Sequence record: LR756501.1
Length of the DNA: 64,000 bases
Strand: one strand, 5' to 3'
Part shown: in pieces, positions 11,437 through 64,000 of the stretch
Layout of the letters: the number at the start of each line of letters is the position of its first letter
Numbering within the stretch: the first letter of the stretch is position 1
Notes under the pieces: generated by a model
The model's input: the letters and a program-made list of their open reading frames with translations, nothing else
The model's database searches: none
Told to the model about the DNA's origin: nothing
Program-made: the position numbers and the translations under genes

Positions 11437-11733
11437 ATGGCAAAGATTAAAAGACTGAATGAGAACGCTGAAGTTTCTTATACTATTGAAGAAATTAAAG
11501 ATATTTGTAAAAAATACAATACATTAAAAACTGAATTATTACCAGTTGCCATTAATAAATGGAACGCTGAAACAAAAGCTAGATGGGAGAGTAGAGCAGA
11601 TTTAATTATGGAACCATCTGATTGTATGATAGATTGGGTAGAAGATTTTGGCGATAGAGGAATAGGCGTAGAATTTCTTGATCAAGACGGTAATGATTAT
11701 AATATTACCTTAACCAAAGAAGACTTAGCATGA
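11437..11733 (+). CDS. Hypothetical protein with CTS-like N-terminus
   Basis: MAKIKRLNE start; AATATATA at 11411. Confidence 0.7.
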   Translation: MAKIKRLNENAEVSYTIEEIKDICKKYNTLKTELLPVAINKWNAETKARWESRADLIMEPSDCMIDWVEDFGDRGIGVEFLDQDGNDYNITLTKEDLA

Positions 11734-12326
11734 AAGTAATGTTTATTACAGGATCGTGTTGGATGCGCGATAAACAAAATAACCTACTACCCTTTGTAAA
11801 AAGTCAAGGATTTATTGATACGTTCACTATGTTTGGTGATCAATTAGTGTACCCTGAGATATATTGGTACGAAGGCGATTATCTATTTCCTTATCTCGAA
11901 AAGATAGTGGAAAAGGAAAACATTGATCTAATTATAGGTTATTCTGCTGGTGGTCATCCTGGTTTTCATCTTTGTAATAAATATAAAATCAAAGGTATTC
12001 ACTTTAATCCAGCCATCGCTTCATCTAGCGAAGCCCCAACTCTTCAAATCTTACCGGAAGATTATAAAAATCTACCTATATACGGTGATCAAGTCATGGT
12101 CATTGGGTCAGAAGACAAAAAATATAAAGGTGGTGTAGACTCACATCTTGTTGTTAGGTATTTAGAACAAAAAGGGTTTGAAGCTGCAGGCGGTGAAATT
12201 CTTATAATTCCAGGTCTCGAGCACGCTGTATCACTCCAATTATTTAAAATGGCGTTTGAATATTATAGAGAAATTTGGTGGGGAGAAAAACAATCAGTTA
12301 GTGAAAGAGCTGACGTCGTGATTTAA
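11730..12326 (+). CDS. Alpha/beta hydrolase (YqiA/UPF0227 esterase-like)
   Basis: IIGYSAGG nucleophile elbow, FNPA, GSED, GLEH. Confidence 0.75.
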   Translation: MKVMFITGSCWMRDKQNNLLPFVKSQGFIDTFTMFGDQLVYPEIYWYEGDYLFPYLEKIVEKENIDLIIGYSAGGHPGFHLCNKYKIKGIHFNPAIASSSEAPTLQILPEDYKNLPIYGDQVMVIGSEDKKYKGGVDSHLVVRYLEQKGFEAAGGEILIIPGLEHAVSLQLFKMAFEYYREIWWGEKQSVSERADVVI

Positions 12327-12342
12327 AAAAAATATTGCATTA

Positions 12343-12912
12343 ATGGAAAATCTAAACGATTATAAACAGTTCAACGAGAATATTCTCAATTTATCTAAAA
12401 AGAGAAAATTTCCGACTCTTGGAGAAAGAGATGGAAAAGTTCATAAAGGTAGTTGGGGTCATTCCGATGTATATTCTATTTACCATCTTTCCAAAAAAGA
12501 TTTAGGTAAATATTTAAACACTTGGTTTGTAGGTGAAGTTGTTCTAGGTAAATATGGAGATACTTTAACTGACGAAATGTGGACTGTTAAAAGAGTAGAT
12601 AAACAAACGGCAGATAACTTATATCGTAAAAATATTAATCCTATTAGGATAGCTATCATGTGTCCAACTGGAGCCAGATTCAAAAAAGACGAATCTGGTG
12701 TTATCACAAATTATCAAATGAAAGCCCAAATTTATTCAATTGATGATTCATCTTATGGCGTTTGGTTTGGTGACATGAAATTAGAAGATCTCAAAAAAAT
12801 TAGACCTCAAATCATGGAATGGATTAACGATCAAGACGAAGTAAACGGTGACGAATTTATTGATTTTTGTTTATCGTTAGGAGCTGATCCTGATAGTGTT
12901 GATTATAATTAA
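12343..12912 (+). CDS. Hypothetical protein with CTS-like N-terminus
   Basis: MENLNDYKQFNE start. Confidence 0.75.
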   Translation: MENLNDYKQFNENILNLSKKRKFPTLGERDGKVHKGSWGHSDVYSIYHLSKKDLGKYLNTWFVGEVVLGKYGDTLTDEMWTVKRVDKQTADNLYRKNINPIRIAIMCPTGARFKKDESGVITNYQMKAQIYSIDDSSYGVWFGDMKLEDLKKIRPQIMEWINDQDEVNGDEFIDFCLSLGADPDSVDYN

Positions 12913-13264
12913 AATTCTTAACAAATTTCACTATTCTTTCTGATAGAAATAAATACATTGAAGTCAGTACTATTATTGAAGAATAGGCGTAATATTTTAA
13001 CATACCAATCAAAGTGATCTTACTCAATAAAGTTAATAAAAATCCAATCAATCCTGGTACAAATACTATTATACCTATAATCAATAATGGTATTAAAGCC
13101 AACGAATACTTCTTAATTCTTAAAATTCTTTCTGCTTTAGCTGTTTCGTAATTCGTACAACAAACCATGACGTTGTCCACGAAATCATCAGAAGGACAAC
13201 ATTCATCTATCCTCCCGATGTTCTCTCTTAGAAAATTATCAAATTTTGTGTCGAATTCTTTCAT
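12857..13264 (-). CDS. Membrane protein with anti-sigma-like N-terminus (PSDDFVDNVM) and two TM helices
   Basis: ATG at 13264; two hydrophobic segments. Confidence 0.6.
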   Translation of the reverse strand: MKEFDTKFDNFLRENIGRIDECCPSDDFVDNVMVCCTNYETAKAERILRIKKYSLALIPLLIIGIIVFVPGLIGFLLTLLSKITLIGMLKYYAYSSIIVLTSMYLFLSERIVKFVKNFNYNQHYQDQLLTINKNQ

Positions 13265-13266
13265 AT

Positions 13267-13404
13267 TTAACAATTACAATTTTTACAATGAGCTTTCAGT
13301 TTTTCAGTTGTTTTATTTGAAGTTGTCTGCCAACCACATTTCTCACACACATATACTTTACTCATGGTGAAAAACTTTCTTATACCTTCTAATATCCTTT
13401 TCAT
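13267..13404 (-). CDS. Small zinc-finger protein, 45 aa, not in ORF track
   Basis: MKRILEGIRKFFTMSKVYVCEKCGWQTTSNKTTEKLKAHCKNCNC; fills the gap between two co-oriented genes. Confidence 0.6.
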   Translation of the reverse strand: MKRILEGIRKFFTMSKVYVCEKCGWQTTSNKTTEKLKAHCKNCNC

Positions 13405-13409
13405 TTACT

Positions 13410-13658: not shown

Positions 13659-13827
13659 CTTTTCCGTCTTTCTTTTTTATTTATATATAATGATTCTAAA
13701 CTGAAGTTTTTCCATATTTTAATTTAATCTAAATTAACTCGTGTAGAACTCATTATCTCTCTTTATTTTGGAGATTAGACACCCGAAATGAAAAAAGGTT
13801 ACAAAAATATTTAATTTTAATTTAATA

Positions 13828-14313: not shown

Positions 14314-15097
14314 TCAATTTGAAGTTTTTATATTTTATTATAAATCCTTCTGTAAGTTTGTTTTTATCATCTAAAGTTTTTATATATCTCAATAATTCTT
14401 TAACAGTATCTAAACCGTCATTATAAATCTTTTCCCATATTACATCTTCGTATTCACTTAAATCTACTGTGTTTACGTACTCACTGTACTTATGGATAGG
14501 TAAAACTTCTTCTGAGTGATTTTCAGAGTAACAATACGTTGAATAAACTCTTTTTGGATTTTCCGGGTTGTGAGTATAAAATACAAATGATCTTGTTATT
14601 TTAGATCCAAAATTTCTAAGGAAACTATTTATCTTGTCTCTTGTTCCACCCGAGAAATAACTATCATCCATAAAGACAAAATCTTCGCCTTCAATATCAT
14701 ATCTTTGTTTGAGGATTTCTATTTTATTACCTTCGTCCTCTTTTACTTTTCTAATTTGACCACTAACTATAACTATATTACCATCGAATTCAATTTCACC
14801 TTCTTCAACAAGTTGATAAATCCACAATCCAAAACTACCCGATGAAACTATATTAACTTCACCCTCTTGTCTCTCAATGATTTCAAACATTTTTCTAATC
14901 ATATCCACGTTATCTGGATTTATAATAAATTCATCTATTCTTTCTAAAAAAGGAAAAGTAAAAACCGCTATTGATTTTTTTCTATATATGGCGTTAATGA
15001 AGTCAACAAAAAGAGCTATATTTTCGTCAGCGATATCGCTAGGTTGAACACTCATATCAAGTAGTTCATCTACGTATTTCCCTAGTTTTTTGTTCAT
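14300..15097 (-). CDS. Type I phosphoribosyltransferase-fold protein (paralog 2)
   Basis: FVFMDDSYFSGGT PRPP-binding loop; ATG at 15097 overlaps the upstream TGA (ATGA). Confidence 0.7.
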   Translation of the reverse strand: MNKKLGKYVDELLDMSVQPSDIADENIALFVDFINAIYRKKSIAVFTFPFLERIDEFIINPDNVDMIRKMFEIIERQEGEVNIVSSGSFGLWIYQLVEEGEIEFDGNIVIVSGQIRKVKEDEGNKIEILKQRYDIEGEDFVFMDDSYFSGGTRDKINSFLRNFGSKITRSFVFYTHNPENPKRVYSTYCYSENHSEEVLPIHKYSEYVNTVDLSEYEDVIWEKIYNDGLDTVKELLRYIKTLDDKNKLTEGFIIKYKNFKLNGKD

Positions 15098-17103
15098 AAT
15101 TTTTTCATATTGGTAATTTGAAAGAAAGGCCACACAGACTCAAATTGAATAACTTCACCAGTATATCCCTCAACATCATGAGCGTAATCAATCCTTAATA
15201 CTCTATAACTATCATTACTATCGTGCTTTACCCAGTGTCCTTTGTGTTTAACGTCCGTTTTATTAGTCTCTTGTGTTACTTGATCATGCCAATAATAACC
15301 TACTCTTTCTATCTTTGCTCTATCTCCAACACTAAATATATTTTCTACAACTTCCATAGGTTCGTTATCACTCAACTTTCCCTTTGAATACCATCTAACT
15401 TCTTCTTCTATTAGATTACCAGGATAAGTGTCTTCTATTCTAAATCCCCACACATCAATGTAATTTTTAGCCTTTTGTATCGCTTCTTCTTCGCTTCCAA
15501 AATTTGTATAATTTCTAACTTTTTTCCATTTTGGATTTCTTACGTAAATATTATATTGCCAAGTGTCGTAATGTTTTTTAGGTCTTATTATAATGCCTTT
15601 ATATTCAACATCATTTTCACCCACATCTTTAAATTTGCTGTTAATTTTAAATTCAGGTTCTTCATCATCTCCTAATCTACCTTTATTGTACCATCTAACT
15701 TCTTCATCTAAAGATCTTTCTCTTACTATAATTGGGAAATTATTATCTACTTCCAAGACACCATATTTCTTTGTATCAAATAAAATTAATATTTGGTTAT
15801 TTTTCTTTGATAGAGCTGGCATTAAACCACATATTTGTCCTTTATATACATCAACTTTAGATTTAGCGTGAAATTCCACTTCTCTGCCTCTTAATAAGAT
15901 GATTACACTTTTTCTTCCTTCTCTTACGTATTTTGACCAGAACTGTGTAACAAGGAATGTTTGTTCATATCTTTGTTTAACATAAGCTTCATTGGTGTCC
16001 CACACTTCTTCACCGTAAGGATCTTCAGGTGTTACCACTCTTTTTCTTGGTGCCATTTCTTGAATAACTATCATTTCATCAGTAACTTCATCTTTGGTTA
16101 AACCACCAATAGGACTACTTAATTTACCTTCTGGGGTTATATATGCTACTTCATATGTATTTTTACCGTTAGAATAATACTTATCACCAAATAAAACAGA
16201 TATTTTATAACCGTTATCAAAAGTCATTTTAGCCTTTTTACCTAAAGTGGGAGGTCCCAAGTGGGGCTTAAATTCTACAATATCTACAAATACTAAATCA
16301 TCGAATGTTTTAAATTCGCCAAGATTCTCATTTAAAAACCCTTTATATTTTTTAATCTTCCTTTTTTCATATTCCCTCTTATAACCATAAGACTTAATAT
16401 TAACTTTATTCGAACCAGCATTTTGAAATTTTTGTTTTAATAATTGAATTTCTTTTAATAATTCTTTTATACTCCTTATCTGCCCCTTCATTATCTGATT
16501 TTCAAGCATATCGTATGGAATATTCGCTTCATCTATATTATTCAACACACTTAACAATTTCTTAACAGGAAGTATATCGTCCATGTGATAATCATAATAT
16601 CTATATACCGCGTAAACATCAGATCTCTTTTGAAAGCTACCGTCGTAAAACACATAAGTTTTAATTATTTTAGCTTTATATTTTTCTAAATGTTTATCTA
16701 TTTCTTTCTTTGTTGATCCAGAGTAATAACTATCATCAAGTAATACAAAATTTTTGTTATAAACTCTGTTCTCATCTCCGCCTATAATTTGGAAGGTTTT
16801 GTTTTTAATACTGCTTCTAAGTGAACCACTAACATGAATAACTATACCAGTTACTTTAATTTTACCTGTTTTTATAAGATTATAAATCCAATCTCCAAAT
16901 TTACCAGTAAGTATAAGATTATAATTAGTGCCTTGCTCTTGTCTTATCTTATCAAAGAGATGATAAACCATATCTATATTTTTAGGATCACGAACAAACT
17001 CATCCATTCTATCAAAGAAATTAGCACCACCTTCGGGTTTATTCTTTTTAAGATTATTAACTACGTCAACTATTTTATTCTTATCCTGCAATAATAAATC
17101 CAT
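15094..17103 (-). CDS. Multimodular protein: N-terminal PRTase-fold domain, internal CTS-like motif, DPYGEE motif and several small domains
   Basis: FVLLDDSYYSGST; KIKKYKGFLNE; DPYGEEVW; two EEVRWYxKGxL copies; FSVGD KOW-like end module. Confidence 0.75.
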   Translation of the reverse strand: MDLLLQDKNKIVDVVNNLKKNKPEGGANFFDRMDEFVRDPKNIDMVYHLFDKIRQEQGTNYNLILTGKFGDWIYNLIKTGKIKVTGIVIHVSGSLRSSIKNKTFQIIGGDENRVYNKNFVLLDDSYYSGSTKKEIDKHLEKYKAKIIKTYVFYDGSFQKRSDVYAVYRYYDYHMDDILPVKKLLSVLNNIDEANIPYDMLENQIMKGQIRSIKELLKEIQLLKQKFQNAGSNKVNIKSYGYKREYEKRKIKKYKGFLNENLGEFKTFDDLVFVDIVEFKPHLGPPTLGKKAKMTFDNGYKISVLFGDKYYSNGKNTYEVAYITPEGKLSSPIGGLTKDEVTDEMIVIQEMAPRKRVVTPEDPYGEEVWDTNEAYVKQRYEQTFLVTQFWSKYVREGRKSVIILLRGREVEFHAKSKVDVYKGQICGLMPALSKKNNQILILFDTKKYGVLEVDNNFPIIVRERSLDEEVRWYNKGRLGDDEEPEFKINSKFKDVGENDVEYKGIIIRPKKHYDTWQYNIYVRNPKWKKVRNYTNFGSEEEAIQKAKNYIDVWGFRIEDTYPGNLIEEEVRWYSKGKLSDNEPMEVVENIFSVGDRAKIERVGYYWHDQVTQETNKTDVKHKGHWVKHDSNDSYRVLRIDYAHDVEGYTGEVIQFESVWPFFQITNMKKL
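16006..16023 (-). repeat. DPYGEE 18-bp coding repeat (first of 12 copies)
   Basis: GATCCTTACGGTGAAGAA; other copies at 17133, 26122, 26649 (minus strand) and 60807, 61379, 62062, 62906, 62948, 63188, 63546, 63874 (plus strand). Confidence 0.95.
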
Positions 17104-17117: not shown

Positions 17118-17726
17118 TTAATCATTCCAATCCTCTTCACCGTAAGGATCTAATTCTGATATTTTTATATCAAGTGTGTTTATATCTGTAAAAACAGGAA
17201 GAAGTTCTATATCACCTTTTTCTGTTAATATTGCGAATTGATCGTGCTTTGTTTCTTCGTCTTCAACTATTAAAATATCTTTAACACTTGTAACAACATC
17301 TATAGCCTTTTGAAATTTTCTCTCTCTCTTAAATTTTACATCTTTTCCAATAAATTTCTTCAAATTTTCAATAAAAGGTTCCACTTCATAATACGCATGT
17401 GAAAAAGGAGTATTATAAACATTCATTTCATTCCCTTTATCGTCAACGAAAATAATATTACTATCACTAGCTGGTCTATCCTCACATGGTTTAACATCAG
17501 ATATTCTTCTCATTCTAACGCAAGCGTTTCTAAACTTTCCATTCTCCTGAGATATTTTAAAGAAGATTAATTTACCAACAAGATTTTCTTTTAGAACTTC
17601 AACCATCCTAGATGTGAGTTTCTTATACTCTTCAGCAAATATATTGCCAAAACTCAATTCATTATTGTAAATCTCTCTACCAGAAACTTTTGCTTCATTT
17701 AAAAACTCTCTGAACATTTTCACCAT
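17118..17726 (-). CDS. CTS-bearing hypothetical protein ending in ELDPYGEEDWND
   Basis: Start re-called at MVKMFREFLNE (17726, or 17717) because AATATATA lies at 17732-17739 inside the longer ORF. Confidence 0.75.
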   Translation of the reverse strand: MVKMFREFLNEAKVSGREIYNNELSFGNIFAEEYKKLTSRMVEVLKENLVGKLIFFKISQENGKFRNACVRMRRISDVKPCEDRPASDSNIIFVDDKGNEMNVYNTPFSHAYYEVEPFIENLKKFIGKDVKFKRERKFQKAIDVVTSVKDILIVEDEETKHDQFAILTEKGDIELLPVFTDINTLDIKISELDPYGEEDWND

Positions 17727-17911: not shown

Positions 17912-19474
17912 TTATTTATTCTTAATCTTCTTGATAATATAATCAACTATTATACCCGGAATATCAATTTCTGATATAACTGCAAATGTTGGGAAGTGAG
18001 GTGAAGAATTAGTTTCCATCACGTAATATTCTTTAGTTTCCATATCTTGAATAATATCAAAACCTACAATATCACATACAAGATGATGAGATATATCTTC
18101 ACACATTCTAATAATATTCATTGGTAATGTTCCCTTTACAGCCTTACCGCCTCTAGCAACGTTGGCTCTAAATTCCTTACTACCTTTAATTCTTTCTTTC
18201 TTAATAACCATTTCTACTTTGTTCTTTATAGATATAACTCTATAATCACCGTCATTAGGAACGAACTTTTGAATAAGCATTAACTTATTACTATAAGAGA
18301 ATTTTTGTGATAACTCCTTCATTGTATCAACTTTCCATACACCTTCTCCTCTATTCAAGTTAATATCCTTAACAATTACAGGGAAACCAAATTCTTTAAC
18401 AGCTTCAATTACTCTTTTAGTTAATCTTGAAGCCATAATCGATGGAATATAAGGATAACCTAAAGAATCAATAAGATGCATTTCGTAAGCTTTATTATCT
18501 AAGTCTTTATACGTACCATATTTAAGATAAGGGATATTATGTTTATCAAGGTAAGATATAATCATCTTTACTATTGTAGTAAAGTTTGCCATAAAACCAA
18601 AGAATACAAAATCGTAATCTTTAAGTTTCATATTATCTATGTAAAAGTCTGGTCCTGTTCTATATACGTCATCGTATTGGCAGAAATCAACGTAGGAATC
18701 TGGTAATCTTTCTTCGAAAAGAACAGTGAATAGATCGGACATTTTATCTTGTCCTTTGAAGAAGTTGTGTTTATCTTCTTCGCCGTGTGTATCGATAGGT
18801 AGATCGAATTGTAGGAATAATATCTTAAATTTACCAGACATATCTCTATCTACCTTTTTAAATCTCCTCATTTTGAATGGGATTTTATATCCAAGATCGA
18901 TATGTGGTTCACCTCCACCGTAATATCTACCGCCTTTATCTGTAACAGATTTAACTTTATAATGTGGTTTAGCTTTTAAAAATTCCAATTGATTTTTATT
19001 CAAGTCCTCAAAATCGTCACAAACAACGTAATCACCAGTTTGAATAGGGAGTTCTTCAACGTTATATACTATTTCATCCTCGGGTATTTCATCTGTTGGA
19101 ACTTCTTCTATTGTTCCATCTTCTTTTTTAGTCTTAGTCATCCAATTCAATATTTCCTTTGGAATATATTTGAAAAATGGATGTTTTTCGAGGTCCGATT
19201 TTTTAACTTTCACTTCTTCTTTCTTTTTACCTTTACCCATCATTTTAAGGAAACCTTCGTATGGTTGACCTCCGTATGGTAATGGATCGTCGTCGAAAAA
19301 AGGAAAAGAAAATTGCTTACCTTCTTCCCCAATTTCTTCTTCGGGAACATAAGGTTTCACTGGTTTTTTAGCCGCTTTAACAGGATGTTTTTCTTGTTTT
19401 TTGGCTGGCTGTTTTTCAACCTTATCTTCTTTTTTCTCAAAGTAGGCTGTGTAATTGTGAACTTTTGCCATCAT
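17912..19474 (-). CDS. RimK-family ATP-grasp ligase with long N-terminal extension
   Basis: FGFPVIVKD, RGEGVWKV, LIQKFV, DYRVI, EFRANVARGG, VGFDII, VMETNSSPHF. Confidence 0.85.
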   Translation of the reverse strand: MMAKVHNYTAYFEKKEDKVEKQPAKKQEKHPVKAAKKPVKPYVPEEEIGEEGKQFSFPFFDDDPLPYGGQPYEGFLKMMGKGKKKEEVKVKKSDLEKHPFFKYIPKEILNWMTKTKKEDGTIEEVPTDEIPEDEIVYNVEELPIQTGDYVVCDDFEDLNKNQLEFLKAKPHYKVKSVTDKGGRYYGGGEPHIDLGYKIPFKMRRFKKVDRDMSGKFKILFLQFDLPIDTHGEEDKHNFFKGQDKMSDLFTVLFEERLPDSYVDFCQYDDVYRTGPDFYIDNMKLKDYDFVFFGFMANFTTIVKMIISYLDKHNIPYLKYGTYKDLDNKAYEMHLIDSLGYPYIPSIMASRLTKRVIEAVKEFGFPVIVKDINLNRGEGVWKVDTMKELSQKFSYSNKLMLIQKFVPNDGDYRVISIKNKVEMVIKKERIKGSKEFRANVARGGKAVKGTLPMNIIRMCEDISHHLVCDIVGFDIIQDMETKEYYVMETNSSPHFPTFAVISEIDIPGIIVDYIIKKIKNK

Positions 19475-23830: not shown

Positions 23831-24661
23831 TTATTCTAAATCCATAATATCCTGTATGGTTGATTTCAGATCTAATGTTTTCATACTATCGTGATAACCC
23901 CTAGTATAATAGGTTACGTGATAACCACTATGTTCTCTATTAGGATGAGTACTATAGATTTCAAATTTAACTGGATATCCAGATCCTTCTTTTTCGTCTG
24001 TGATAAAAACTCCGTCGTTCCCAGCTTCATCTGTGCCAATTTCATATGAAAATCCTAAATCATCTAAAGTATCTGATATAAATTGATCAGAACTATCTAA
24101 ATTTCCTCTTAATCCTTCTTTTAAAGAAGGTGTAAAATATTGAACCATCATTCTTTTGGCTTTATAATCTCCAACGCTAGGTTTACAATTATGTTTATTA
24201 TATAAATGTCCGATTTTAAAGTTTATATTATCACAAACTTCTTCACCACATTCATTGCATTTCACTTTTGGACAAGGTTGTTTAGGAATCATGTTTTCGT
24301 TGGTTTTATATTTTTCATTCCACCAAATATCGAAATCAGCTCTCGATGATGTATAATCAAATACAGTTCCCTCACTTTCAGCTATTTGTGAATCTCTTTC
24401 TTTCCAAGCTTCCCAAGCTATTTCCATTGCATCAGTCATAGAAATCATTTCGTTACTACCTAATTTTGGTTTCATATATCTTTCTCTGAACTTCTTAGCC
24501 CTTTCATTATCTGGATCATCGAAACCATCATTATAACTATTTCCTTTAAATCCACTTATACTAAAGTGTCCCTTTTCTTCACCACTTAAAGAACTATCGT
24601 GGTCGCTCCAAGGTTTTAGTTCTTCTTGGATATATTGATCTCTTTTCTTTAGATTATTCAT
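23831..24661 (-). CDS. CTS-bearing modular hypothetical protein with a Zn-finger-like segment
   Basis: MNNLKKRDQYIQE start; CNECG...HLYNKH; internal TNE and LKE junctions. Confidence 0.75.
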   Translation of the reverse strand: MNNLKKRDQYIQEELKPWSDHDSSLSGEEKGHFSISGFKGNSYNDGFDDPDNERAKKFRERYMKPKLGSNEMISMTDAMEIAWEAWKERDSQIAESEGTVFDYTSSRADFDIWWNEKYKTNENMIPKQPCPKVKCNECGEEVCDNINFKIGHLYNKHNCKPSVGDYKAKRMMVQYFTPSLKEGLRGNLDSSDQFISDTLDDLGFSYEIGTDEAGNDGVFITDEKEGSGYPVKFEIYSTHPNREHSGYHVTYYTRGYHDSMKTLDLKSTIQDIMDLE

Positions 24662-25448
24662 AGCTTTCTATTTTAGTTTTTTTTCTTTCTGGAAGTGGAT
24701 TATCTTCTGTACCTCTTACGATTTTAACTTCGTCCTCTTCTTCCATTTCATCGAGATCTTCAGTTACAAGTTTTACTTGTTTTTGATTAAAACTTTCCCA
24801 ATAATTAACCCAACTTTCATTTGGCATATCTCTTTTATTTCCTTTATTTGGAAGTCCTTCTGGGTTATCTTCTGTGCCAAAACGAATCTTATTTGAATTT
24901 AGTCCTCTTAACATACTCTTTGTATCTGGATTTTCTTCATCGGCGTCTTCTTCCTCGTCAGTGCCTCTTTCTATTTCTTCGGGCTCTTCCTCGTCACCGT
25001 ATTCTAAGTCTTGCTCTTCAGCAACTTCTACTTCATCGGGATCGAGTTCTCTTTCTCTCTCGGGCTCATATTCGTCATCAAAAGATTCATATATCTTCTG
25101 TTTAGTTGCCCAAGCTGGTGCGCCTTCAAATCCTTGAACAGTTGAAGAACCAGGTTTATCGTCTTTCTTCTGGGTGAGTTCTTTAAGAACTTCTTTCAGG
25201 GTGTATTTCTTGGTTTCACCAGTCATTCTATCAGTTATATAGATACTTTCGTTTTGAACGCTGTCGATGAAACCGTCTATTTTTTTCGTCAAAATATGTT
25301 TACCAACTCTAAGAAAATCCATTGTTGGAATAGCTCTATTTATAGTTTGTTTCAATGGAGCTTTAGGGAATAGATCAGTATCACCACCTACACCTTTACC
25401 TTTATTTTCGACGCTTTCTTTTACGAAATTATTGAATCTTTTTATCAT
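24654..25448 (-). CDS. CTS-bearing acidic protein
   Basis: MIKRFNNFVKE start; Glu-rich; GTEDNP twice. Confidence 0.8.
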   Translation of the reverse strand: MIKRFNNFVKESVENKGKGVGGDTDLFPKAPLKQTINRAIPTMDFLRVGKHILTKKIDGFIDSVQNESIYITDRMTGETKKYTLKEVLKELTQKKDDKPGSSTVQGFEGAPAWATKQKIYESFDDEYEPERERELDPDEVEVAEEQDLEYGDEEEPEEIERGTDEEEDADEENPDTKSMLRGLNSNKIRFGTEDNPEGLPNKGNKRDMPNESWVNYWESFNQKQVKLVTEDLDEMEEEDEVKIVRGTEDNPLPERKKTKIESYE

Positions 25449-25465: not shown

Positions 25466-26041
25466 TTAAAATACTATTTCTTTTGTATCAACAACCTTCA
25501 TAATCTTCTTGGCTGTTTTTCTTAGTATTGCGTTCCATTCACCTGATAATCTTTCAGTTTCATCTGATCTCTTAATATCATATCCACCAAATCTCTCATA
25601 AAGTACGTTGAAATATTTTTCATTATCTAATCCTATATTTATACCAATATATGAGTAACTTCTTCCGTCTACTGCCAATCTGATTCCGTCTTTTAATAGG
25701 ATTTTTACGTCGCCGTGTTTATTTGATTTAATTTTACCTATATTTTCCTCTGTTACCATCTCCCCGATCTCTATCATATTCTGAATACCATCAGTTAATT
25801 CAGTTCCTTGTCTATCATAAATTTCTTGATATTGTTTAGTTCTACCATCGGTAAATTCTCTAGCTTTACCTTTAAAGTATTCTTTTTTATCTTTGTTGAA
25901 GAATGGTTCATTTGGATCTTTTTTGGCCCCCCTGCCTTGACTTCTCGCAACATTTTCTTCACCTTGTTCTGTTTCCCAACCGGTGGCGACGTGAAAACTT
26001 CTATATTCTTCGTATGTTTTTAAATTATTAAATTTTTCCAT
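25466..26041 (-). CDS. CTS-bearing hypothetical protein
   Basis: MEKFNNLKTYEEY start. Confidence 0.75.
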   Translation of the reverse strand: MEKFNNLKTYEEYRSFHVATGWETEQGEENVARSQGRGAKKDPNEPFFNKDKKEYFKGKAREFTDGRTKQYQEIYDRQGTELTDGIQNMIEIGEMVTEENIGKIKSNKHGDVKILLKDGIRLAVDGRSYSYIGINIGLDNEKYFNVLYERFGGYDIKRSDETERLSGEWNAILRKTAKKIMKVVDTKEIVF

Positions 26042-26052: not shown

Positions 26053-26568
26053 TTATTTTTTGTAATATCTTTGTTGCCTTATTTCATTCCAATCATATTT
26101 TGTTCTATTATCGTCCCAAATTTCTTCACCGTAAGGATCTAATTCTGGATCAACAACCTTTTCTTCTTCCTCTTCTACTTCTTTCTTCTGAATCCATTTG
26201 TGTTTCTTTTTCCATTCTTCAAAAGAAAATTTGCCCTCTTTTACATAATCTGTGCCTTTATGTTTCTTTGGATCTCCTTCTTTAGTATATCCCAAACTAT
26301 CTCTTGAATCATCTTGTACAAAAGTTTCATATGAATCTATATGTCTATCAAGAGGGTTATCCCAAAAGAATAAATTATTCATTTGATGTTTTTTCAAATC
26401 TTGCATCACTCTATCACCAATATCACCACCCATACTAGACTCATCCGGTCCAACTTTTATAACTTGAGATTTTTTAATTTCATCTCTTATTCTATGAAGT
26501 TGATCCACAGTTGATTGTCTTGGCAGACTTTCAAAAACCTTATCGTATTTATTAAATTTAGTTATCAT
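26053..26568 (-). CDS. CTS-bearing protein with DPYGEE motif
   Basis: MITKFNKYDKVFE start; ELDPYGEEIWD. Confidence 0.8.
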   Translation of the reverse strand: MITKFNKYDKVFESLPRQSTVDQLHRIRDEIKKSQVIKVGPDESSMGGDIGDRVMQDLKKHQMNNLFFWDNPLDRHIDSYETFVQDDSRDSLGYTKEGDPKKHKGTDYVKEGKFSFEEWKKKHKWIQKKEVEEEEEKVVDPELDPYGEEIWDDNRTKYDWNEIRQQRYYKK

Positions 26569-26570: not shown

Positions 26571-26837
26571 TTATTTATAAGATTTAGCTCTCTTATCGGC
26601 TGCTGTAGCTTTTTTGGCGGCTTTTCTTTCTTTTCTTTCGTCTTGTTCTTCTTCACCGTAAGGATCGCTAGAACTTACTTTATTATCTTTCTTACCTTTT
26701 TTAAGCATCGCTGCTTTTTCTTTTTCTTCTTTGGCGTGTTGTTTTTTGTATTCTTCGTCGGGAGATAATTCTTTTTTAGCTCTTAAGAACCCTTCGTTTA
26801 CGAACTCGTCAAATGATGTATTTATATTTTTACCCAT
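26571..26837 (-). CDS. CTS-bearing basic protein with DPYGEE motif
   Basis: MGKNINTSFDEFVNE start; SDPYGEEEQD. Confidence 0.8.
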   Translation of the reverse strand: MGKNINTSFDEFVNEGFLRAKKELSPDEEYKKQHAKEEKEKAAMLKKGKKDNKVSSSDPYGEEEQDERKERKAAKKATAADKRAKSYK

Positions 26838-26855: not shown

Positions 26856-27194
26856 TTATTCATCTTTCATTTTTAAATAATTCTCAATCATATTAAAATC
26901 GTGTTCTACGTCTTCAATCATATCTTTGATATTAGGCATTCCATTTATAATTTTCTCCTGTATATCGTCTATACAACTGAATATCTCTTCGTCGTAATGT
27001 TGTAGGTCAGCCATAAAATCTTCAAGAGGTTGAGGTAATACTTTCTCAATAGCTTGACTAACGTGATTAATAGTATCACCAAGCATTTGTACAAGTACCT
27101 TTTGTTCTAGAAGAGCTTGCATGATTTTATCAATCTTGTCTTCGTAGTTTACGTCAGCGTTTTCAAAAGTTTTATATGTTTTAAGTTTATTCAT
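26856..27194 (-). CDS. CTS-bearing helical protein, paralog of the N-terminal domain of 27187..28257
   Basis: MNKLKTYKTFE start; LGDTINHVSQAIEKVLP. Confidence 0.8.
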   Translation of the reverse strand: MNKLKTYKTFENADVNYEDKIDKIMQALLEQKVLVQMLGDTINHVSQAIEKVLPQPLEDFMADLQHYDEEIFSCIDDIQEKIINGMPNIKDMIEDVEHDFNMIENYLKMKDE

Positions 27195-58101: not shown

Positions 58102-60621
58102 ATGAACTATCTATTAAGTAAAAAATTTGACGGAACATTCACAATGAACTTTATTGGGACACAAACTTTAACCCAAACTAATAATACTATGTACCTCAAA
58201 CCAACAGCCCCAATAATGGGAGTTAAGAAAATTACAGGATATACAGACATAATAAGAGGTCAAAATTCTTACCAGTACGTTAAAGTATATTTCAAATACC
58301 AAAATAAATACGATAACCCAAGTGCGAAGTGCCAAGATTGCTGGAGTGAAATGATGCCAATTGCAGCGATAACAGGTATAACATGTATTCCAAACGAACC
58401 ATTTGATATTGAATTATTCTATTACAGAGTTGACGACGGTCCATTTGATAGTAGTCACCCTAGAACAAACATATATATTGGTGACGACAGTTTATCACAA
58501 GCCGTAGTTATATCAGGCGAATACGAATTTAATTATACAGACGGTCCTTTTACTCTAACAACCGTTAACAACGAAGTAGTACTAGTACCTAAAGATATTT
58601 ATAAAATATTTTCTATTAGTGATTTTCAAATAATTGCAGATGATCCAGGAAATTTAGAATTACATTATAGAGTTACACAAGATAACGGAAGAACATATTC
58701 GAATTGGGAACCACTTAATAAAGCTAATATATCCAGTTTTAGATTTAATAATCTTAGATTTGCTAGAATGGAATATAAAATCAAAATGATATACGACGAC
58801 GGTAATCCAATAAATGTTTACGATATTATACTTATAGGAGATTTTCAAAACGTATCAGCTAACTATCTTAAAACCAACAGGTATGGAATAAGACAGGATT
58901 GTTTAACTTCTTATATAAATCCAACGACTGGTAATACAGATACTTGTGGTTGGAATATAAGTACACAGTCTGGTGCTTCATATGGAATAGCACCTGGTAA
59001 CGGGTTTGTTACTCCTGCTATGACTCCTGCTGATTTAAATAATAATTTCTGGACACAAGGATTAAGTTGTTACTCGGCTAATCCTAATAATTCAAATGGT
59101 GTAGTACCATCTGGTGGTGTAATGGCTGGTGTAAATGCTCAAAATCAAACAGCTGCTGCACAAAGCACTTTATGGAACCCATATAGTATAACACAGATTA
59201 TGGCGTTTGCTAATACGATGGCAAATCAACTTAATAGCATATTTGCTTGGGAAATTGATTATCACTTAACAGATCCAGATTCAAATGGTATAGACTTTGT
59301 TCTACATGAATATCAATTATATAACATCATTGATATGAAGAAGGTAAAGATATTGGTACCTGATAATAAATTCCCTGATAATATGATTAAGTTTAATCAA
59401 TTCAGTTTAGATTTATTCGATACCTTTGAAATACATATTCTTAAAGACGAGTTCAAAAGAAAATTTGGTATAACTGCTCGCCCCGCTGAGAACGATATTT
59501 TGTTCATTTGTCCTATCAATAGATTGTACTACGTTAAACACGCTCAAGTTTTTAGAGACGTTATGAACGCTGGTTACTATTACAAAGTTATTCTTGAAAA
59601 ATACGAACAAAAAGCAAATATCAGAAACCTACACGCAGAGTCAAAAGCTCTTCTGGACGTTCTCACCAAAAATACCACAATGGACGAACTCTTCGGACCT
59701 GAAAAGACACAAGAAGAAAATATCATCGCTAATATCGAACAATTTAAACCATTTACTTTCGATCCAATGCGTTATGTTGTTAATAATAAAGTAATTAGAG
59801 TTGAACAAGATTTATATAACGGTAATTTTGATTTTTCGAAGAATCATTATGATTTTAAGAACGTAATTAATAAGACTGCTGTAGTATTTAAAAAGAGTGA
59901 TAATACGTTTCTTGAGTCGTCTAACAGATCATTGATCTGTTGGTTTAATTTCAACAACGCTTGGGTATATGAAAAACCAAGTAAGGCTGCTATCACCACT
60001 TATAATGTTGATCAGAATACCAATTTCTGGTTGCTTGATAATTTTGATGAGTCAACTAATAAGGGCTATAGAATGTGGTATTACAAGAAGGATATTAACT
60101 TCCAGTTGAATGATCAGTTCTACAAGATACCTAATCTTAATTTATTAACTAATATATGGTATGCTTTAATAATCAATATTGATCAACGTCAAAAGACTGT
60201 TAATCTTAATATTTACACAAGGGATAACGATTACGATATTGTTTTCTTCCAACCAGATTCTTACCAGATGAGTACAATAAGTTGGACAGATACAACAGGA
60301 TATACTTATTTGATGAGTATGGGATATAAACCAGTAGATAATGTGGAGTTAAGAAATCCATCTACTGAGTACGTGGCAGTAAAAGAATCTAATTACGAAA
60401 ATGTTTACGTACAACATTTCGAACACGAGATGGATATAACTATAAAAGGGTCTAATATAAAATATACTAATTTAAGAATACTTACAGATATAGTGCCTAA
60501 TAACGAAATATTTAATACTTTAAATCAATATTACGTGGCTAACGCAGAGAAAGTGTTGTTGGCTGATAACGCTGATAGAAATATTTATACTGATAACTAT
60601 ATAAATAAAAACTGGACATAA
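58102..60621 (+). CDS. Large structural protein with a central T4 gp14 neck-like domain
   Basis: FDTFEIHI...FKRKFG...RPAENDILF...RLYYV...YYKVILEKYE resembles the gp14 RPxEGDLIY...LFEI region. Confidence 0.55.
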   Translation: MNYLLSKKFDGTFTMNFIGTQTLTQTNNTMYLKPTAPIMGVKKITGYTDIIRGQNSYQYVKVYFKYQNKYDNPSAKCQDCWSEMMPIAAITGITCIPNEPFDIELFYYRVDDGPFDSSHPRTNIYIGDDSLSQAVVISGEYEFNYTDGPFTLTTVNNEVVLVPKDIYKIFSISDFQIIADDPGNLELHYRVTQDNGRTYSNWEPLNKANISSFRFNNLRFARMEYKIKMIYDDGNPINVYDIILIGDFQNVSANYLKTNRYGIRQDCLTSYINPTTGNTDTCGWNISTQSGASYGIAPGNGFVTPAMTPADLNNNFWTQGLSCYSANPNNSNGVVPSGGVMAGVNAQNQTAAAQSTLWNPYSITQIMAFANTMANQLNSIFAWEIDYHLTDPDSNGIDFVLHEYQLYNIIDMKKVKILVPDNKFPDNMIKFNQFSLDLFDTFEIHILKDEFKRKFGITARPAENDILFICPINRLYYVKHAQVFRDVMNAGYYYKVILEKYEQKANIRNLHAESKALLDVLTKNTTMDELFGPEKTQEENIIANIEQFKPFTFDPMRYVVNNKVIRVEQDLYNGNFDFSKNHYDFKNVINKTAVVFKKSDNTFLESSNRSLICWFNFNNAWVYEKPSKAAITTYNVDQNTNFWLLDNFDESTNKGYRMWYYKKDINFQLNDQFYKIPNLNLLTNIWYALIINIDQRQKTVNLNIYTRDNDYDIVFFQPDSYQMSTISWTDTTGYTYLMSMGYKPVDNVELRNPSTEYVAVKESNYENVYVQHFEHEMDITIKGSNIKYTNLRILTDIVPNNEIFNTLNQYYVANAEKVLLADNADRNIYTDNYINKNWT

Positions 60622-61019
60622 TGAAACATTTGACGTCAATATATGAATTATATAAAACTCCTAATCTTAAGCAGAATGATATAGAGGAGATGATAAAGTA
60701 TTTGGAAGATTACGCTGAAAGAAACGGTCACGATATTTATAGACAAAAGCCTATGGATGTATCCGCGTTGTTGCCAGATTTTAAAGAAACTAGAATAAGT
60801 GGAGAAGATCCTTATGGTGAAGAAGAATGGGAAGTTGAAAAACCAAAACTAATGTCTGCTGCTATAATGTTATTTGAAGATGATTCAAAGAACGCTAAAA
60901 AAATTCTAACATTTGCATGGATGACTAGTGGAACAAAATATTCTAATTCATTATATATAGGTTACTCTAAATTTGATAACATAGATTTTAATATACTAAA
61001 ACAACTTGTAGAAGGATGA
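60621..61019 (+). CDS. Hypothetical protein with CTS-like start and DPYGEE motif
   Basis: MKHLTSIYELY; EDPYGEEEWE. Confidence 0.75.
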   Translation: MKHLTSIYELYKTPNLKQNDIEEMIKYLEDYAERNGHDIYRQKPMDVSALLPDFKETRISGEDPYGEEEWEVEKPKLMSAAIMLFEDDSKNAKKILTFAWMTSGTKYSNSLYIGYSKFDNIDFNILKQLVEG

Positions 61020-61411
61020 TAAAGAAATTTAAACTATTTGAAGCTGATGAAGTTGAACTCGTTGAGAAAGGCGAATTCGATATAGAAGGTCTAATGGAAA
61101 GACTTAAAGATCAAGAAAATAGAATAGAATTTTTAACTATTTTCTTGAATAGAATTCTAAGAGATAATTACGCGTCTTTTAGTGTAAGAGATGGTGGTAA
61201 GATAGAGAAAGTAAAGGTAAAAGAAATTCATATACTGCTCAATCAGTCGAATGAAGATAATGATACTGTTTTGATGAGTATATTTTTAAGAGATGATTCT
61301 AATAAAGATTATTGTTTACATTCAACTGAAAGAATCACAGTTTTTAGAATTGCTGGTAAAACAGTTATAACAGCAGAAGATCCTTACGGTGAAGAAGAAT
61401 GGTCGTATTAA
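61016..61411 (+). CDS. CTS-bearing protein ending in EDPYGEEEWSY
   Basis: MIKKFKLFE start. Confidence 0.8.
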   Translation: MIKKFKLFEADEVELVEKGEFDIEGLMERLKDQENRIEFLTIFLNRILRDNYASFSVRDGGKIEKVKVKEIHILLNQSNEDNDTVLMSIFLRDDSNKDYCLHSTERITVFRIAGKTVITAEDPYGEEEWSY

Positions 61412-61426
61412 AAATAAAATATAAAA

Positions 61427-61741
61427 ATGGATAAGTTAGAAGATTTTAAATCATTTGAAGGATATAAAGGTATGGAAGTTGGTGGTATAATTGCAATGTT
61501 AGACACACTTCAAAAAATGTCTGACGTGGCTGAAATGTTAAAAGCAACTAAACCAAAGACTATACAAAAGAAGATATTATCTTTTTTAAAGAATAACGAA
61601 GGTAATATTGATGAAATGACTGCTGCAAGAATTAGGTATATAGCACAAATATGGAACGACGCTTTTGAAGGAACAGGTATAATATTTGGTTTAAAAAGAA
61701 GAATTGACCCATTAGTCGAAAAATTAAAACAATTGAAATGA
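61427..61741 (+). CDS. CTS-bearing helical protein
   Basis: MDKLEDFKSFE start. Confidence 0.75.
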   Translation: MDKLEDFKSFEGYKGMEVGGIIAMLDTLQKMSDVAEMLKATKPKTIQKKILSFLKNNEGNIDEMTAARIRYIAQIWNDAFEGTGIIFGLKRRIDPLVEKLKQLK

Positions 61742-62562
61742 TAAAAACATTTGACGAGTTTATAAATGAATCAGATTACAGAAATGTAACTGGTTACGGT
61801 ACAATGGGTGGAAGTGGTGATCAAAATACAGGACCTTCATTTAATAAAGGACCTGATGCAGCCACTTATAGATTACCTTCTGTTGTTGGTGTAGAATCTG
61901 ACGATATAAGTGATCCTTATTTTTCAGGTAGAAGAAGTCAAAAACGTAAAAAACTTAGAAAACACCCAGCCATAGAAAAGAACAGAAAAGATAAAACTAA
62001 ATATCTTGACAGGTTGGAAAAAGATACTCAAAATAAATTAATTGAGAATAAAAATGATTTAGATCCTTATGGTGAAGAAAATTGGGATGAGAAGAATCCA
62101 AATGGTAATTTTCTTCTTAATTTTGAACAGCGTAGATTACAAGAAGCTGAGGATATGTTACCTAAAATACAACAATATTTACCTAACGCGTATATAGATC
62201 AAGAAAATCAAAACTTTGCTGCTATATTATGTGACGCTGATGAATATTTAACATTAGATAGTTTTGATCCAGCAAATCCAGGTGTATCTTACGGTGAATT
62301 TGCCAGTAACGCCTTTGAAGATTTAGAAGGATTAAGAGAAATTGTAACAAGTTTAAAAAATATTGGAGCTAAAAATATTTTAGTTGCTTCAATACTTATA
62401 GATGATATACAAGTTGAGGAAAAACCATATCAAGTAATTACATCAGATACATTATATTTTGAAGGAATAAGTAGAAGACAAGCTAATGAAGACGTGGATT
62501 GGGGAGTACATCCAAATGAATTAGATGGTGGTAATAGATCATGGAGAGCTTGGTGGGATTAA
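61738..62562 (+). CDS. CTS-bearing two-module protein with DPYGEE at the module junction
   Basis: MIKTFDEFINE start; LIENKNDLDPYGEENWD. Confidence 0.8.
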   Translation: MIKTFDEFINESDYRNVTGYGTMGGSGDQNTGPSFNKGPDAATYRLPSVVGVESDDISDPYFSGRRSQKRKKLRKHPAIEKNRKDKTKYLDRLEKDTQNKLIENKNDLDPYGEENWDEKNPNGNFLLNFEQRRLQEAEDMLPKIQQYLPNAYIDQENQNFAAILCDADEYLTLDSFDPANPGVSYGEFASNAFEDLEGLREIVTSLKNIGAKNILVASILIDDIQVEEKPYQVITSDTLYFEGISRRQANEDVDWGVHPNELDGGNRSWRAWWD

Positions 62563-62572
62563 AAGAAAAGAT

Positions 62573-63463
62573 ATGATAACTAAATTTAAAATATTTGAGG
62601 CTATATCGCTAGACTATCCACTACCTTTATTTAAGGTTGGGGATACTGTTTATTATCACGGAAGACTTAGAAAACATCATGGTTATTATAAAGTAAAAGA
62701 ACGTTATCATTCTAGTTTATTTCAACAATCTGAATTAGAAAAAGGTGATACTGGATGGAGATATGATTTAAGTGAAGATGGTGTTCATATATTTATCAGA
62801 GGTTCTTGGGAAATGTCGTCTTCACCAACAGAAGAGGAAGGTAAAAGAAAAGATAAAGAATATCAAGATAAAAAAGAAGAATTAAGAAAACTTCATATGG
62901 ATTTTGATCCTTACGGTGAAGAGGTTTGGGAATCAATCAGACAGGATGATCCTTACGGTGAAGAAATTTGGGAAAATGAAGAAGTATTTAAAATAGGTGA
63001 TAAAGTTATATGTATGAACACTGAAAACGCCATTGGTGTAACATTACATAAAAAATATATTGTGTCTAATCCTAATCCACAGATATTTAATAATAATTGT
63101 GTAGAAATAATAAATGATTTTGATAAAAAAGGAATTTATATTAACAGTAGATTTAGAAAAGTTTTAAATGAAAATGTGAATATTTTAGATCCTTACGGTG
63201 AAGAAGATTGGGAAGATAAAAACAAAGCATCTGAATTTGATATATTTGATGATGACGACAGAGAAGAAAATCTTTATCATAGAGTGGGTGAATGTAGATT
63301 ATGTGGTAGATACGCTCCTCACGGATTGATGTTAGACGACGTTTGTCCAGCTTGTAGGTTCGAAGATGATCATTGCTATATGTGTGGAAGTTACGTACCA
63401 CACGAATTTCTACACGACGGTGCTTGCGATTTATGTTTAAAGGATCCAACATGGAATATGTAA
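62573..63463 (+). CDS. CTS-bearing protein: three DPYGEE motifs, two KOW-like modules, tandem Zn fingers
   Basis: Start re-called at MITKFKIFE; FKVGDTV, FKIGDKV; CRLCG..CPAC, CYMCG..CDLC. Confidence 0.8.
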   Translation: MITKFKIFEAISLDYPLPLFKVGDTVYYHGRLRKHHGYYKVKERYHSSLFQQSELEKGDTGWRYDLSEDGVHIFIRGSWEMSSSPTEEEGKRKDKEYQDKKEELRKLHMDFDPYGEEVWESIRQDDPYGEEIWENEEVFKIGDKVICMNTENAIGVTLHKKYIVSNPNPQIFNNNCVEIINDFDKKGIYINSRFRKVLNENVNILDPYGEEDWEDKNKASEFDIFDDDDREENLYHRVGECRLCGRYAPHGLMLDDVCPACRFEDDHCYMCGSYVPHEFLHDGACDLCLKDPTWNM

Positions 63464-63494
63464 AAAATAATTTTTTAATTTAATATATAGCGGT

Positions 63495-63830
63495 ATGTTA
63501 AAAAAATTCGATAAATTCGCAAATGAGAAACTGAACTCCGAACTTGACCCTTATGGTGAAGAAAGGGATGAAGACGACGTGTTTGAGGAATTTGATATTA
63601 ATGATGACTTATCGGTTGAAGATGTATGGGTTGAAACCACTTATACATACAATGTGAAATTAGGTAAATATAAATTGAAATATAAATTAGTATATGACGA
63701 TGATGGTTTTTCTTCGTTAGATAGAGTAGAAGAAAATGACGAAAAATTACCAGAACATGTTTTAGATTTCTGTGAAGAATATGACGAAGAAATAAAAGAA
63801 ATATTAGTGGCTGAGAGATATGGTAGATAA
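63495..63830 (+). CDS. CTS-bearing acidic protein with DPYGEE motif
   Basis: MLKKFDKFANE...ELDPYGEERDE; AATATATA at 63482. Confidence 0.8.
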   Translation: MLKKFDKFANEKLNSELDPYGEERDEDDVFEEFDINDDLSVEDVWVETTYTYNVKLGKYKLKYKLVYDDDGFSSLDRVEENDEKLPEHVLDFCEEYDEEIKEILVAERYGR

Positions 63831-64000
63831 TTATAAAAAGTTTATAAAAGAAAACGACGAACATAAAGACGTTGATCCTTACGGTGAAGAAAACTGGAAG
63901 GAAAAACCTTATTTAGATTTTGATAAAGATAAAATGGTAAGTGATTGTCTTGATATGATTTATCAAGATATGAGTGGATATAGAGATTGGATAATGCAAG
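63820..64000 (+). CDS. 5' part of a CTS-bearing protein with DPYGEE motif (runs off the window)
   Basis: MVDNYKKFIKENDEHKDVDPYGEENWKEKP... Confidence 0.8.
   Translation, partial: MVDNYKKFIKENDEHKDVDPYGEENWKEKPYLDFDKDKMVSDCLDMIYQDMSGYRDWIMQ

Follow-up and report, generated by a model that had tools for sequence, protein, structure and literature searches.

A T4-like N-terminal tag and the motif DPYGEE-x-W in proteins of a 735-kb megaphage as candidate signals for packaged cargo

The internal proteins of bacteriophage T4 share only a targeting sequence, which leads to the scaffolding core and is removed by the protease gp21, cutting after Glu (PMC3012670, PMC5694885); this peptide is sufficient to carry foreign proteins into heads (PMC5694885, PMC3012670). 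N-terminal peptides of similar form (hereafter, N-tags) are considered here in a 64-kb stretch of phage DNA (the window, bases 69,061–133,060 of the sequence record LR756501.1 and also of LR756503.1, the sequence being identical) and in the remainder of the former record. LR756501.1 represents an uncultured phage of 735,411 bp and ~30% G+C, whose proteins are abundant in K, F, N, I and E; the record carries no annotation. The 735-kb genome was the largest phage genome then known, the largest genomes belonging to the "Mahaphage" clade with predicted Bacteroidetes hosts (PMC7162821), and neither "internal head" nor "packaged" occurs in the text of that paper.

Altogether, 97 of the 1,043 open reading frames (ORFs) of this genome (~9%), spread over the whole 735 kb, possess an N-tag. 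Judging from the sequence, these tags are moderately likely to be capsid-targeting propeptides of the T4 type, carried by a very large set of packaged proteins, which would imply targeting, cleavage, packaging and injection of the tagged proteins. A second shared peptide, DPYGEE-x-W (hereafter, the D-motif), accompanies the N-tag in a part of these proteins. Coordinates below are those of the window unless referred to the record.

The N-terminal tag: form, number and excess over chance

The general form of the tag is M-x-K-x-[FY]-x-x-[FY]-(aliphatic-x)-E, with the tag Glu at residue 9–14 of the protein. The strict set was defined by a regular expression (^M-x(1-6)-[FY]xx[FY]E or ...[FY][ILVMAF]xE) applied to ORFs of at least 50 amino acids (aa). 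The ORFs were called mechanically, hence some of the start codons are wrong, and for the genome-wide counts the remainder of the record was taken as separate 50-kb pieces, each analysed alone. About 16 tagged ORFs (10 strict and 6 loose) are located in the window. The first-pass annotation of this DNA had described a shared N-terminus on some 20 proteins of the window, clustered at 11.4–12.9, 17–19.5, 23.8–28.3 and 57–64 kb, as a sign of an unusually large cargo set. The motif is real and the N-termini quoted there are present, but the count in the window is about 16; the clusters represent local samples of a genome-wide set, and the ORFs 11437–11733, 11730–12326, 23831–24661 and 57339–58031 are untagged. 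The tagged set is large indeed, about 100 proteins genome-wide, the earlier figure of ~20 concerning the window only, and its packaging is presumptive. At the genome-wide scale, the claim is bolder and harder to accept without proteomics.

Comparison with shuffled N-termini, a check named in advance in the same annotation, came out in favor of the motif. When residues 2–16 of each ORF were shuffled, so that the N-terminal composition was kept, 9.1±2.9 tags were obtained at the first start codon (maximum 19) vs 81 observed genome-wide; in the window, 1000 shuffles yielded 0.62±0.78 strict tags (maximum 5) vs 7 observed at the first start codon. Among internal Met residues, 28 of 3,456 genome-wide are followed by the motif. 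One strict match in the window, the ORF 10971–11399(+), was rejected as a false positive, its N-terminus belonging to the Pyr_excise domain.

Relatives and genomes of similar G+C content were sampled at 50 kb each. The regular expression matched none of 62 ORFs in Tenacibaculum phage PTm1 (29% G+C), none of 47 in Prevotella phage Lak-A1 (27% G+C), 3 of 53 in LR756504 and 2 of 46 in LR756500. The shuffles together with the PTm1 and Lak controls rule out the tag as an artefact of composition. Paralogy is ruled out as well: once the motifs were masked, an all-against-all BLAST divided the 97 tagged proteins into 84 families, with 11 tagged members in one family of 22. Homologues at 40–60% identity kept the tag in 22 of 27 cases. 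The synonymous codons of F, Y, E, K and N within the tag track the genome usage, suggesting that selection acts on the peptide, and the variation of the synonymous sites rules out a DNA-level repeat or a recombination site. Codon 2 of tagged genes favors ATA (73% vs 46%). The tagged genes are arranged in islands, forming 58 adjacent pairs vs 24±4 expected.

The tags end in the form typical of a gp21-type site, i.e., aliphatic-x-Glu followed by a small residue, where cleavage may be predicted. Position P3 is occupied by I, L or V in 58 of 61 tags of variant B and by L or I in 22 of 36 tags of variant A; A, S or G follows the Glu (P1') in 32 of 61 tags (52%, vs a background of 17.5%), and Ala alone in 25% vs 3.7%. 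The Pfam families found in tagged proteins, each once, were PPK2, methyltransferase, DeoC, radical SAM, GNAT, and deaminase with a CCA-adding enzyme carrying an HD domain. The tag precedes the domain, which starts at residue 22 in the radical SAM protein, 48 in DeoC, 52 in the methyltransferase and 166 in PPK2.

The resemblance to T4-type capsid-targeting sequences, likewise proposed in the first-pass annotation, was confirmed on the T-even phage RB33 (KM607001.1). Its internal proteins Ip4, Ip7 and Ip9 and one unannotated ORF of the internal-protein locus match the strict expression. A position matrix trained on 61 megaphage tags only (median of the training tags, 22.6 bits) assigned 18.1–25.6 bits to the same four ORFs, and only 4 of 63 RB33 ORFs scored above 12 bits.

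The second motif, DPYGEE-x-W

The D-motif, missed by the first-pass annotation, occurs in 12 copies in the window and in ~109 copies in the genome, which with two exceptions lie within called ORFs (92 proteins). The first six positions (D, P, Y, G, E, E) do not vary among the 107 copies in called ORFs, and W is found in 101 of these. Synonymous codons of the motif vary, pointing to a constraint on the peptide. Both signatures occur together in 30 of the 92 D-motif proteins (Fisher p=2.5e-11), and 159 proteins, ~15% of the ORFs, carry the N-tag, the D-motif or both. The D-motif lies at most six residues from the C-terminus in 39 of 92 proteins (C-terminal in ~36% of cases), 4–7 residues past the N-tag in at least a dozen proteins, and between modules in long proteins.

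The clearest polyprotein-like architecture of the genome is that of the record ORF 154863–158564(-), whose 1,233 aa comprise an N-tag, a D-motif, a cytidine/MafB19-like deaminase (residues 115–227), three D-motifs and a CCA-adding enzyme with an HD domain (790–1144). In the window, the protein 62573–63463(+) is built of a module, two adjacent D-motifs, a second module, a third D-motif and a zinc ribbon, and its homologues display gain or loss of modules exactly at the D-motifs. AlphaFold2 (AF2) predicted residues 15–110 and 236–296 of this protein as folded and placed the tag and the three D-motifs in low-confidence coil, which is weak evidence given the shallow alignment. The possibility of split polyproteins, i.e., a C-terminal D-motif followed by an N-tagged gene, was considered as well; the association is weak (6 of 25 vs 61 of 651) and explained by clustering.

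A degenerate DNA pattern of the D-motif matched at least 120 loci in IMG/VR, often with several copies per locus; among the matches listed, 62% of the locus ORFs have homologues in LR756501.1, so the listed loci belong to relatives, and 199 of 1,353 ORFs possess an N-tag. A profile search of 1.84 billion proteins returned 220 cluster representatives (E <= 0.001), with the N-tag at the start in 69 of the best 150 matches. Some of these representatives contained as many as 12 matched stretches, or 10 copies by the strict motif, with a median spacing of 120 residues, and Gp23, ankyrin repeats and ART-PolyVal were among the Pfam families found in 111 profile matches. Across 596 Gb of genomes from bacteria and archaea, the DNA pattern produced 72 single matches vs ~70 estimated by hand from the degeneracy of the pattern, with no computed null; mimicry of a host motif was ruled out on this comparison. 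The D-motif was not found in the 50-kb samples of LR756504, LR756500, Lak-A1 and PTm1; in the sample of PTm1, a cultured relative with virion proteomics, both motifs are missing. A literature search for DPYGEE found no phage paper with the motif in the library covered.

Head genes and other features of the window

The window encodes a T4-like head module (Table 1). The protease domain of the fused protease-scaffold gene scored 22.9 bits with Pfam Peptidase_S77, under the cut-off of 27, and found no match in a PDB sequence search; PTm1 has the same gene order, and its gene is annotated as "prohead core scaffolding protein and protease". The scaffold repeats of this gene contain the core of the tag: 14 of the 61 internal [FY]xx[FY][ILVM]xE cores of the genome belong to the ORF 4853–7276, ~12 of them in the repeat run, and three further internal cores reside in a small scaffold paralogue. 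The repeats are kept in the orthologue of the 636-kb relative LR756504. The repeat does not represent the whole tag, which was ruled out by scores of the full tag matrix under 14 bits.

The capsid protein site HQMNE, to which the first-pass annotation had matched the tags, is present in the gp23-like ORF, aligns to the ...TINE/N of the PTm1 capsid protein (the slash marks the cut) and is located 43–68 residues from the start. It is a plausible maturation site, judging from the sequence; an alternative Glu six residues upstream (EYAE) has just as strong a claim. The RB33 gp23 maturation site at residue 65, FGSFLTE/A, itself displays the tag core aromatic-x-x-aromatic-aliphatic-x-Glu, followed by Ala.

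Many small ORFs of the genome are fragments paralogous to its own head proteins (portal, major capsid protein, protease and scaffold), and several of them end in DPYGEE-x-W. In record coordinates, these are portal-like ORFs (142020–143048, 15148–15435 and 48028–48549), capsid-protein fragments (542326, 552409, 276342, 730457, 145891, 497197, 565330 and 564998), a stand-alone protease paralogue (11314–11850) and a scaffold-repeat paralogue (619760–620383). In the fragment 730457, the N-tag aligns beside the end of the capsid propeptide. The D-motif is carried by the stand-alone protease paralogue, the scaffold-repeat paralogue, a portal fragment and capsid-protein fragments. The portal protein itself terminates (4300–4735(+)) in a ~90-residue Gly/Ala/Gln low-complexity tail with GGAQ-type repeats, unusual for gp20-type portals.

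Table 1. Head genes, tagged proteins and D-motifs of the window (window coordinates; aa, amino acids; nt, nucleotide positions)
Feature	Coordinates	Strand	Basis
T4 gp20-like portal protein	2909..4735	+	Pfam Portal_T4, E=1e-69; tblastn to T4-like portals
Head maturation protease (gp21/S77 type, residues 4-249) fused to scaffold	4853..7276	+	phrog_207, E=4.9e-27
~12 tandem 14-residue scaffold repeats, I-x-Y-x-x-Y-[IVL]-A-E-x-[LV]-D-x-x, with tag core	5795..6313	+	
gp23-like major capsid protein; start probably ATG at codon 26	7280..9106	+	Pfam Gp23, E=1.9e-25; phrog_138
HQMNE, candidate capsid maturation site	7469..7483	+	
Loose N-tag protein (MENLNDYKQFNE...), 189 aa, no known domain	12343..12912	+	
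Strict N-tag protein (MKEFDTKFDNFLRE...), 135 aa, C-terminal half hydrophobic	12857..13264	-	
Multi-module protein of 669 aa with PRTase-like domain, a tag-like site in the interior and DPYGEEVW (nt 16000-16023)	15094..17103	-	
Strict N-tag protein (MVKMFREFLNEA...), 202 aa, C-terminus ...ELDPYGEEDWND; tag from internal ATG	17118..17726	-	
RimK-like ATP-grasp protein, weak doubtful tag (…YTAYFE…)	17912..19474	-	Pfam RimK, E=1.7e-20
Strict N-tag protein (MIKRFNNFVKES...), 264 aa, tail acidic low-complexity	24654..25448	-	
Loose N-tag protein (MEKFNNLKTYEE...), 191 aa, faint PBECR1 hint	25466..26041	-	E=0.09
Loose N-tag protein (MITKFNKYDKVFES...), DPYGEEIW at nt 26116-26139	26053..26568	-	
N-tag protein (loose class), longer prefix (MGKNINTSFDEFVNEG...), degenerate D-motif DPYGEEEQ	26571..26837	-	
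Strict N-tag protein (MNKLKTYKTFEN...), 112 aa	26856..27194	-	
Loose N-tag protein (MEKFRKLKTFEN...), 356 aa, zinc-finger-like CxxC pairs	27187..28257	-	
Weak tag candidate, loose class (…KLKKYEQFQPEEE), 77 aa	57088..57321	-	
Internal DPYGEEEW (nt 60807-60830), without N-tag	60621..61019	+	
Strict N-tag protein (MIKKFKLFEA...), 131 aa, C-terminus ...EDPYGEEEWSY	61016..61411	+	
Strict N-tag protein (MDKLEDFKSFEG...), 104 aa	61427..61741	+	
Strict N-tag protein (MIKTFDEFINES...), 274 aa, DPYGEENW at nt 62062-62085	61738..62562	+	
Strict N-tag protein (MITKFKIFEA...), 296 aa, tag from internal ATG	62573..63463	+	
Strict N-tag protein (MLKKFDKFANE...), D-motif 6 residues past tag	63495..63830	+	
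Strict N-tag protein (MVDNYKKFIKE...), DPYGEENW; leaves window, 125 aa in record	63820..64000	+	

Among the tagged proteins of the window, 17118–17726(-) has orthologues at 54–79% identity in which both motifs are kept; its AF2 model is poor (pLDDT 47). In the multi-module protein 15094–17103(-), the Pribosyltran match of Pfam reached 23.3 bits, under the cut-off of 26.3, and the internal tag scored 23 bits at residue 250 (nt 16321–16356). The same protein contains twice, at residues ~520–600, a recurrent peptide (E)VRWY-x-KGKL, which is found directly after the N-tag in other proteins, e.g., that of the record ORF 573490–573855, and may represent a third shared motif or a small repeated domain.

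A promoter-like element, TTTAATATATA, followed 13 nt downstream by a conserved A, recurs in the window upstream of 2909, 4853, 11437, 17726, 19474, 28257, 32339, 32419, 42284, 49436, 55227, 58031, 58102 and 63495, thereby heading the portal, the protease, the giant tail-fibre-like genes and the tagged operons alike. Its 8-nt core, AATATATA, occurs in 290 copies in the genome, 157 of which precede a gene start by no more than 100 nt, mostly by 10–40 nt. This core precedes 27187–28257(-), the first gene of a minus-strand run of tagged genes extending from 28257 down to ~24654. The element ends just 4–5 nt before the ATG at 17726, where TAATATATAG is located 4 nt before the start codon of 17118–17726(-), and at 63495, suggesting leaderless or near-leaderless mRNAs of these two genes.

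Within or beside the head module are also a TnsA-like endonuclease, 1559–2080(+), a denV-type pyrimidine-dimer glycosylase, 10971–11399(+), and a family-2 glycosyltransferase, 9039–10493(+), the ORF of which, from the TTG start as called, overlaps the end of the capsid gene. Three giant ORFs, 33834–42284(-), 42318–49436(-) and 50233–55227(-), of 2,816, 2,372 and 1,664 aa, stand out by their G+C content (0.41–0.47 vs ~0.30) and very long antisense ORFs; presumably, they encode repetitive fibre-like structural proteins.

Possible roles of the two motifs and comparison with known systems

If the N-tags act as their T4 counterparts do, the following sequence of events can be envisaged. A peptide of 9–14 residues, M-[IV]-K-K-[FY]-x-x-[FY]-([ILV]-[NK])-E, would bring the protein into the core of the assembling prohead. 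This core would be made of the protease-scaffold protein with its own 14-residue repeats, built around the core aromatic-x-x-aromatic-aliphatic-x-Glu. After closure of the shell, the gp21-type protease would cut after the Glu, freeing the cargo in the head and chopping the scaffold, and the cargo would exit with the DNA at infection. The device would thus serve ~100 unrelated proteins (~16 in the window), including enzymes and "beads-on-a-string" multi-module proteins. The methyltransferase, GNAT, deaminase, nucleotidyltransferase and PRTase-like domains hint that the cargo may include anti-defence effectors.

Several observations weigh against targeting of the tagged proteins into the capsid. 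The phage is uncultured and known here from its genes alone, and a load of ~100–160 packaged proteins would be without precedent. The tagged set includes enzymes expected in the cytoplasm, such as DeoC aldolase, PPK2, radical SAM and the CCA-adding enzyme. On the scaffold repeats, the full tag matrix scores under 14 bits and the core alone matches; DPYGEE-x-W lies outside the aliphatic-x-Glu rule; and the AF2 models are of low confidence overall. The promoter-like element precedes 18.6% of the tagged vs 15.5% of the other genes and is, therefore, not tag-specific; considered as a late-promoter test of the tagged genes, it was without discrimination. Finally, the tag matrix found no match above 16 bits in the 50-kb samples of PTm1, Lak-A1 and LR756504. 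Together with the few regular-expression matches, this scarcity in the nearest relatives by capsid protein implies that the likeness to T-even phages could be a convergence on the protease site and not a trait of shared descent.

One alternative, which appears unlikely, is that the tag serves only as a processing signal: a protease of the gp21 family, e.g., the stand-alone paralogue, would remove the leader in the cytoplasm for activation or quality control, without packaging. The free-standing paralogue at 11314–11850 of the record, the metabolic type of many tagged enzymes and the internal tag-like sites at module borders are in line with this possibility, as is the coincidence of the core with the cleavage-site pattern of RB33 gp23, so that the core may simply be the recognition site of the protease. 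However, the same T4 peptide suffices for the encapsidation of foreign proteins (PMC5694885, PMC3012670), the known gp21-type proteases work inside proheads, and processing alone leaves the strict N-terminal position and the conserved M-I-K-K prefix unexplained.

It is just as improbable, if not slightly more so, that both motifs serve as addresses or docking sites for a phage-built structure or hub other than the capsid, e.g., a compartment for replication or assembly, a condensate or a chaperone shared by these proteins. Such a role would accommodate the ~15% of ORFs (159 proteins) with one or both motifs and the occurrence of DPYGEE-x-W at any position (N-proximal, inter-module or C-terminal), apparently in predicted coil, like short linear docking motifs; the literature search, too, found no known counterpart of this motif. 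At the same time, the N-tag and the T-even capsid tag are the same, the tag core is found again in the head scaffold, paralogues of head proteins carry the D-motif, and no candidate gene for the compartment or the receptor has been identified. Hardly any credence can be given to the pattern as a consequence of A+T-rich composition, of constraints that the start of translation sets on the mRNA, or of the expansion of a single paralogous family: the ~30% G+C genome with its K/F/N/I/E-rich proteins, the ATA preference at codon 2 (73% vs 46%), hinting at a start-context effect, and the family of 22 with 11 tagged members are outweighed by the composition-keeping shuffles (9 vs 81 observed), the lack of tags in PTm1 and Lak-A1 of the same G+C, the free synonymous sites and the 84 families.

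Capsid targeting of the tagged proteins is the preferred reading, and the place of the D-motif in it deserves a separate comment. DPYGEE-x-W is too invariant for a typical protease site. It is possible, albeit doubtful, that it constitutes a second signal of the same system, acting as a docking or processing site at module ends. Conceivable, but less likely than not, is a broader scheme in which the clade loads an "injected proteome" of 100–160 proteins, with polyproteins of up to ~12 modules, by a two-signal code combining the N-terminal propeptide and DPYGEE-x-W as a new cargo-docking or processing signal.

Should the tags work as in T4, the 735-kb phage would arrive with about a hundred ready-made proteins, many of them enzymes, and not with DNA alone. 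The "extra" genes of huge phages would then be read differently, and a sequence rule would become available for predicting virion cargo in uncultured phages. Either the T4 targeting peptide would long predate the T-even group and reach far beyond it, or it has been reinvented. As to DPYGEE-x-W, it is a clean, clade-specific peptide signal without a described counterpart, represented by at least 220 protein clusters in public data.

Among the described systems, the capsid-targeting sequence of T4 (IPI, IPII, IPIII and Alt; Mullaney and Black 1996, via PMC5694885; PMC3012670) is, like the N-tag, an N-terminal peptide of 10–20 residues on otherwise unrelated proteins. The megaphage consensus is near-identical to the N-termini of the T-even RB33 Ip proteins, with aliphatic-x-Glu followed by a small residue, and the megaphage shares with T4 the gp21-type protease, the scaffold, the gp23-type capsid protein and the arrangement of the tagged genes in islands. 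In contrast to T4, where a handful of genes in hypervariable internal-protein loci bear the peptide, the megaphage has it on ~100 genes, including those of enzymes and of multi-module proteins of up to 1,233 aa. It also differs in a second tag variant ending in ...[FY]-K-[LI]-[FY]-E, in the fusion of protease and scaffold and in the extra DPYGEE-x-W.

The phages phiKZ, 201phi2-1 and SPN3US (PMC5694885, PMC7411985, PMC10052503) resemble the megaphage in their large heads with ~50 protein species, many of them ejected, in a T4-related prohead protease that cuts after Glu, in a diverged protease paralogue and in propeptides thought to be targeting signals. Most of their propeptides, however, exceed 100 residues and have no consensus in common, the site is small-x-Glu (A/S/G), and 8–19 proteins are processed, whereas the megaphage tags comprise 9–14 residues with an aliphatic P3. 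The G-E-E within DPYGEE would formally fit the small-x-Glu pattern of these sites.

Polyvalent proteins (Iyer et al. 2017, PMC5512222) are likewise multi-domain polypeptides of disparate activities, predicted to enter the host with the DNA. Some megaphage proteins do combine several disparate domains in one polypeptide, proteins of relatives comprise up to 10–12 modules, and the repertoires overlap (GNAT, Pol-beta nucleotidyltransferase, PRTase-like, methyltransferase and deaminase domains here; ART-PolyVal in a relative). Unlike polyvalent proteins, the megaphage modules have a T4-type tag in front of them and an invariant 8-residue motif between them, and many units are small domains of unknown function. 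As to a zincin-like processing peptidase, no peptidase family appeared among the Pfam families of 72 + 111 proteins (aggregated scans, top families only). In encapsulins, a short terminal peptide on unrelated cargo docks inside an HK97-fold shell. The C-terminal position of many D-motifs is reminiscent of such cargo-loading peptides; the consensus differs, and the D-motif is also internal and multi-copy.

Overall, the T4 targeting sequence, the hypervariable internal-protein loci and the processed ejection proteins of giant phages are already known. New is the scale, with ~9% of the ORFs bearing the N-tag and 15% either motif; new are also the T-even-type tag in a Bacteroidetes-associated megaphage, its link to the scaffold repeats, and DPYGEE-x-W with the bead-on-a-string proteins. 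There is a real chance that DPYGEE-x-W is a new kind of signal.

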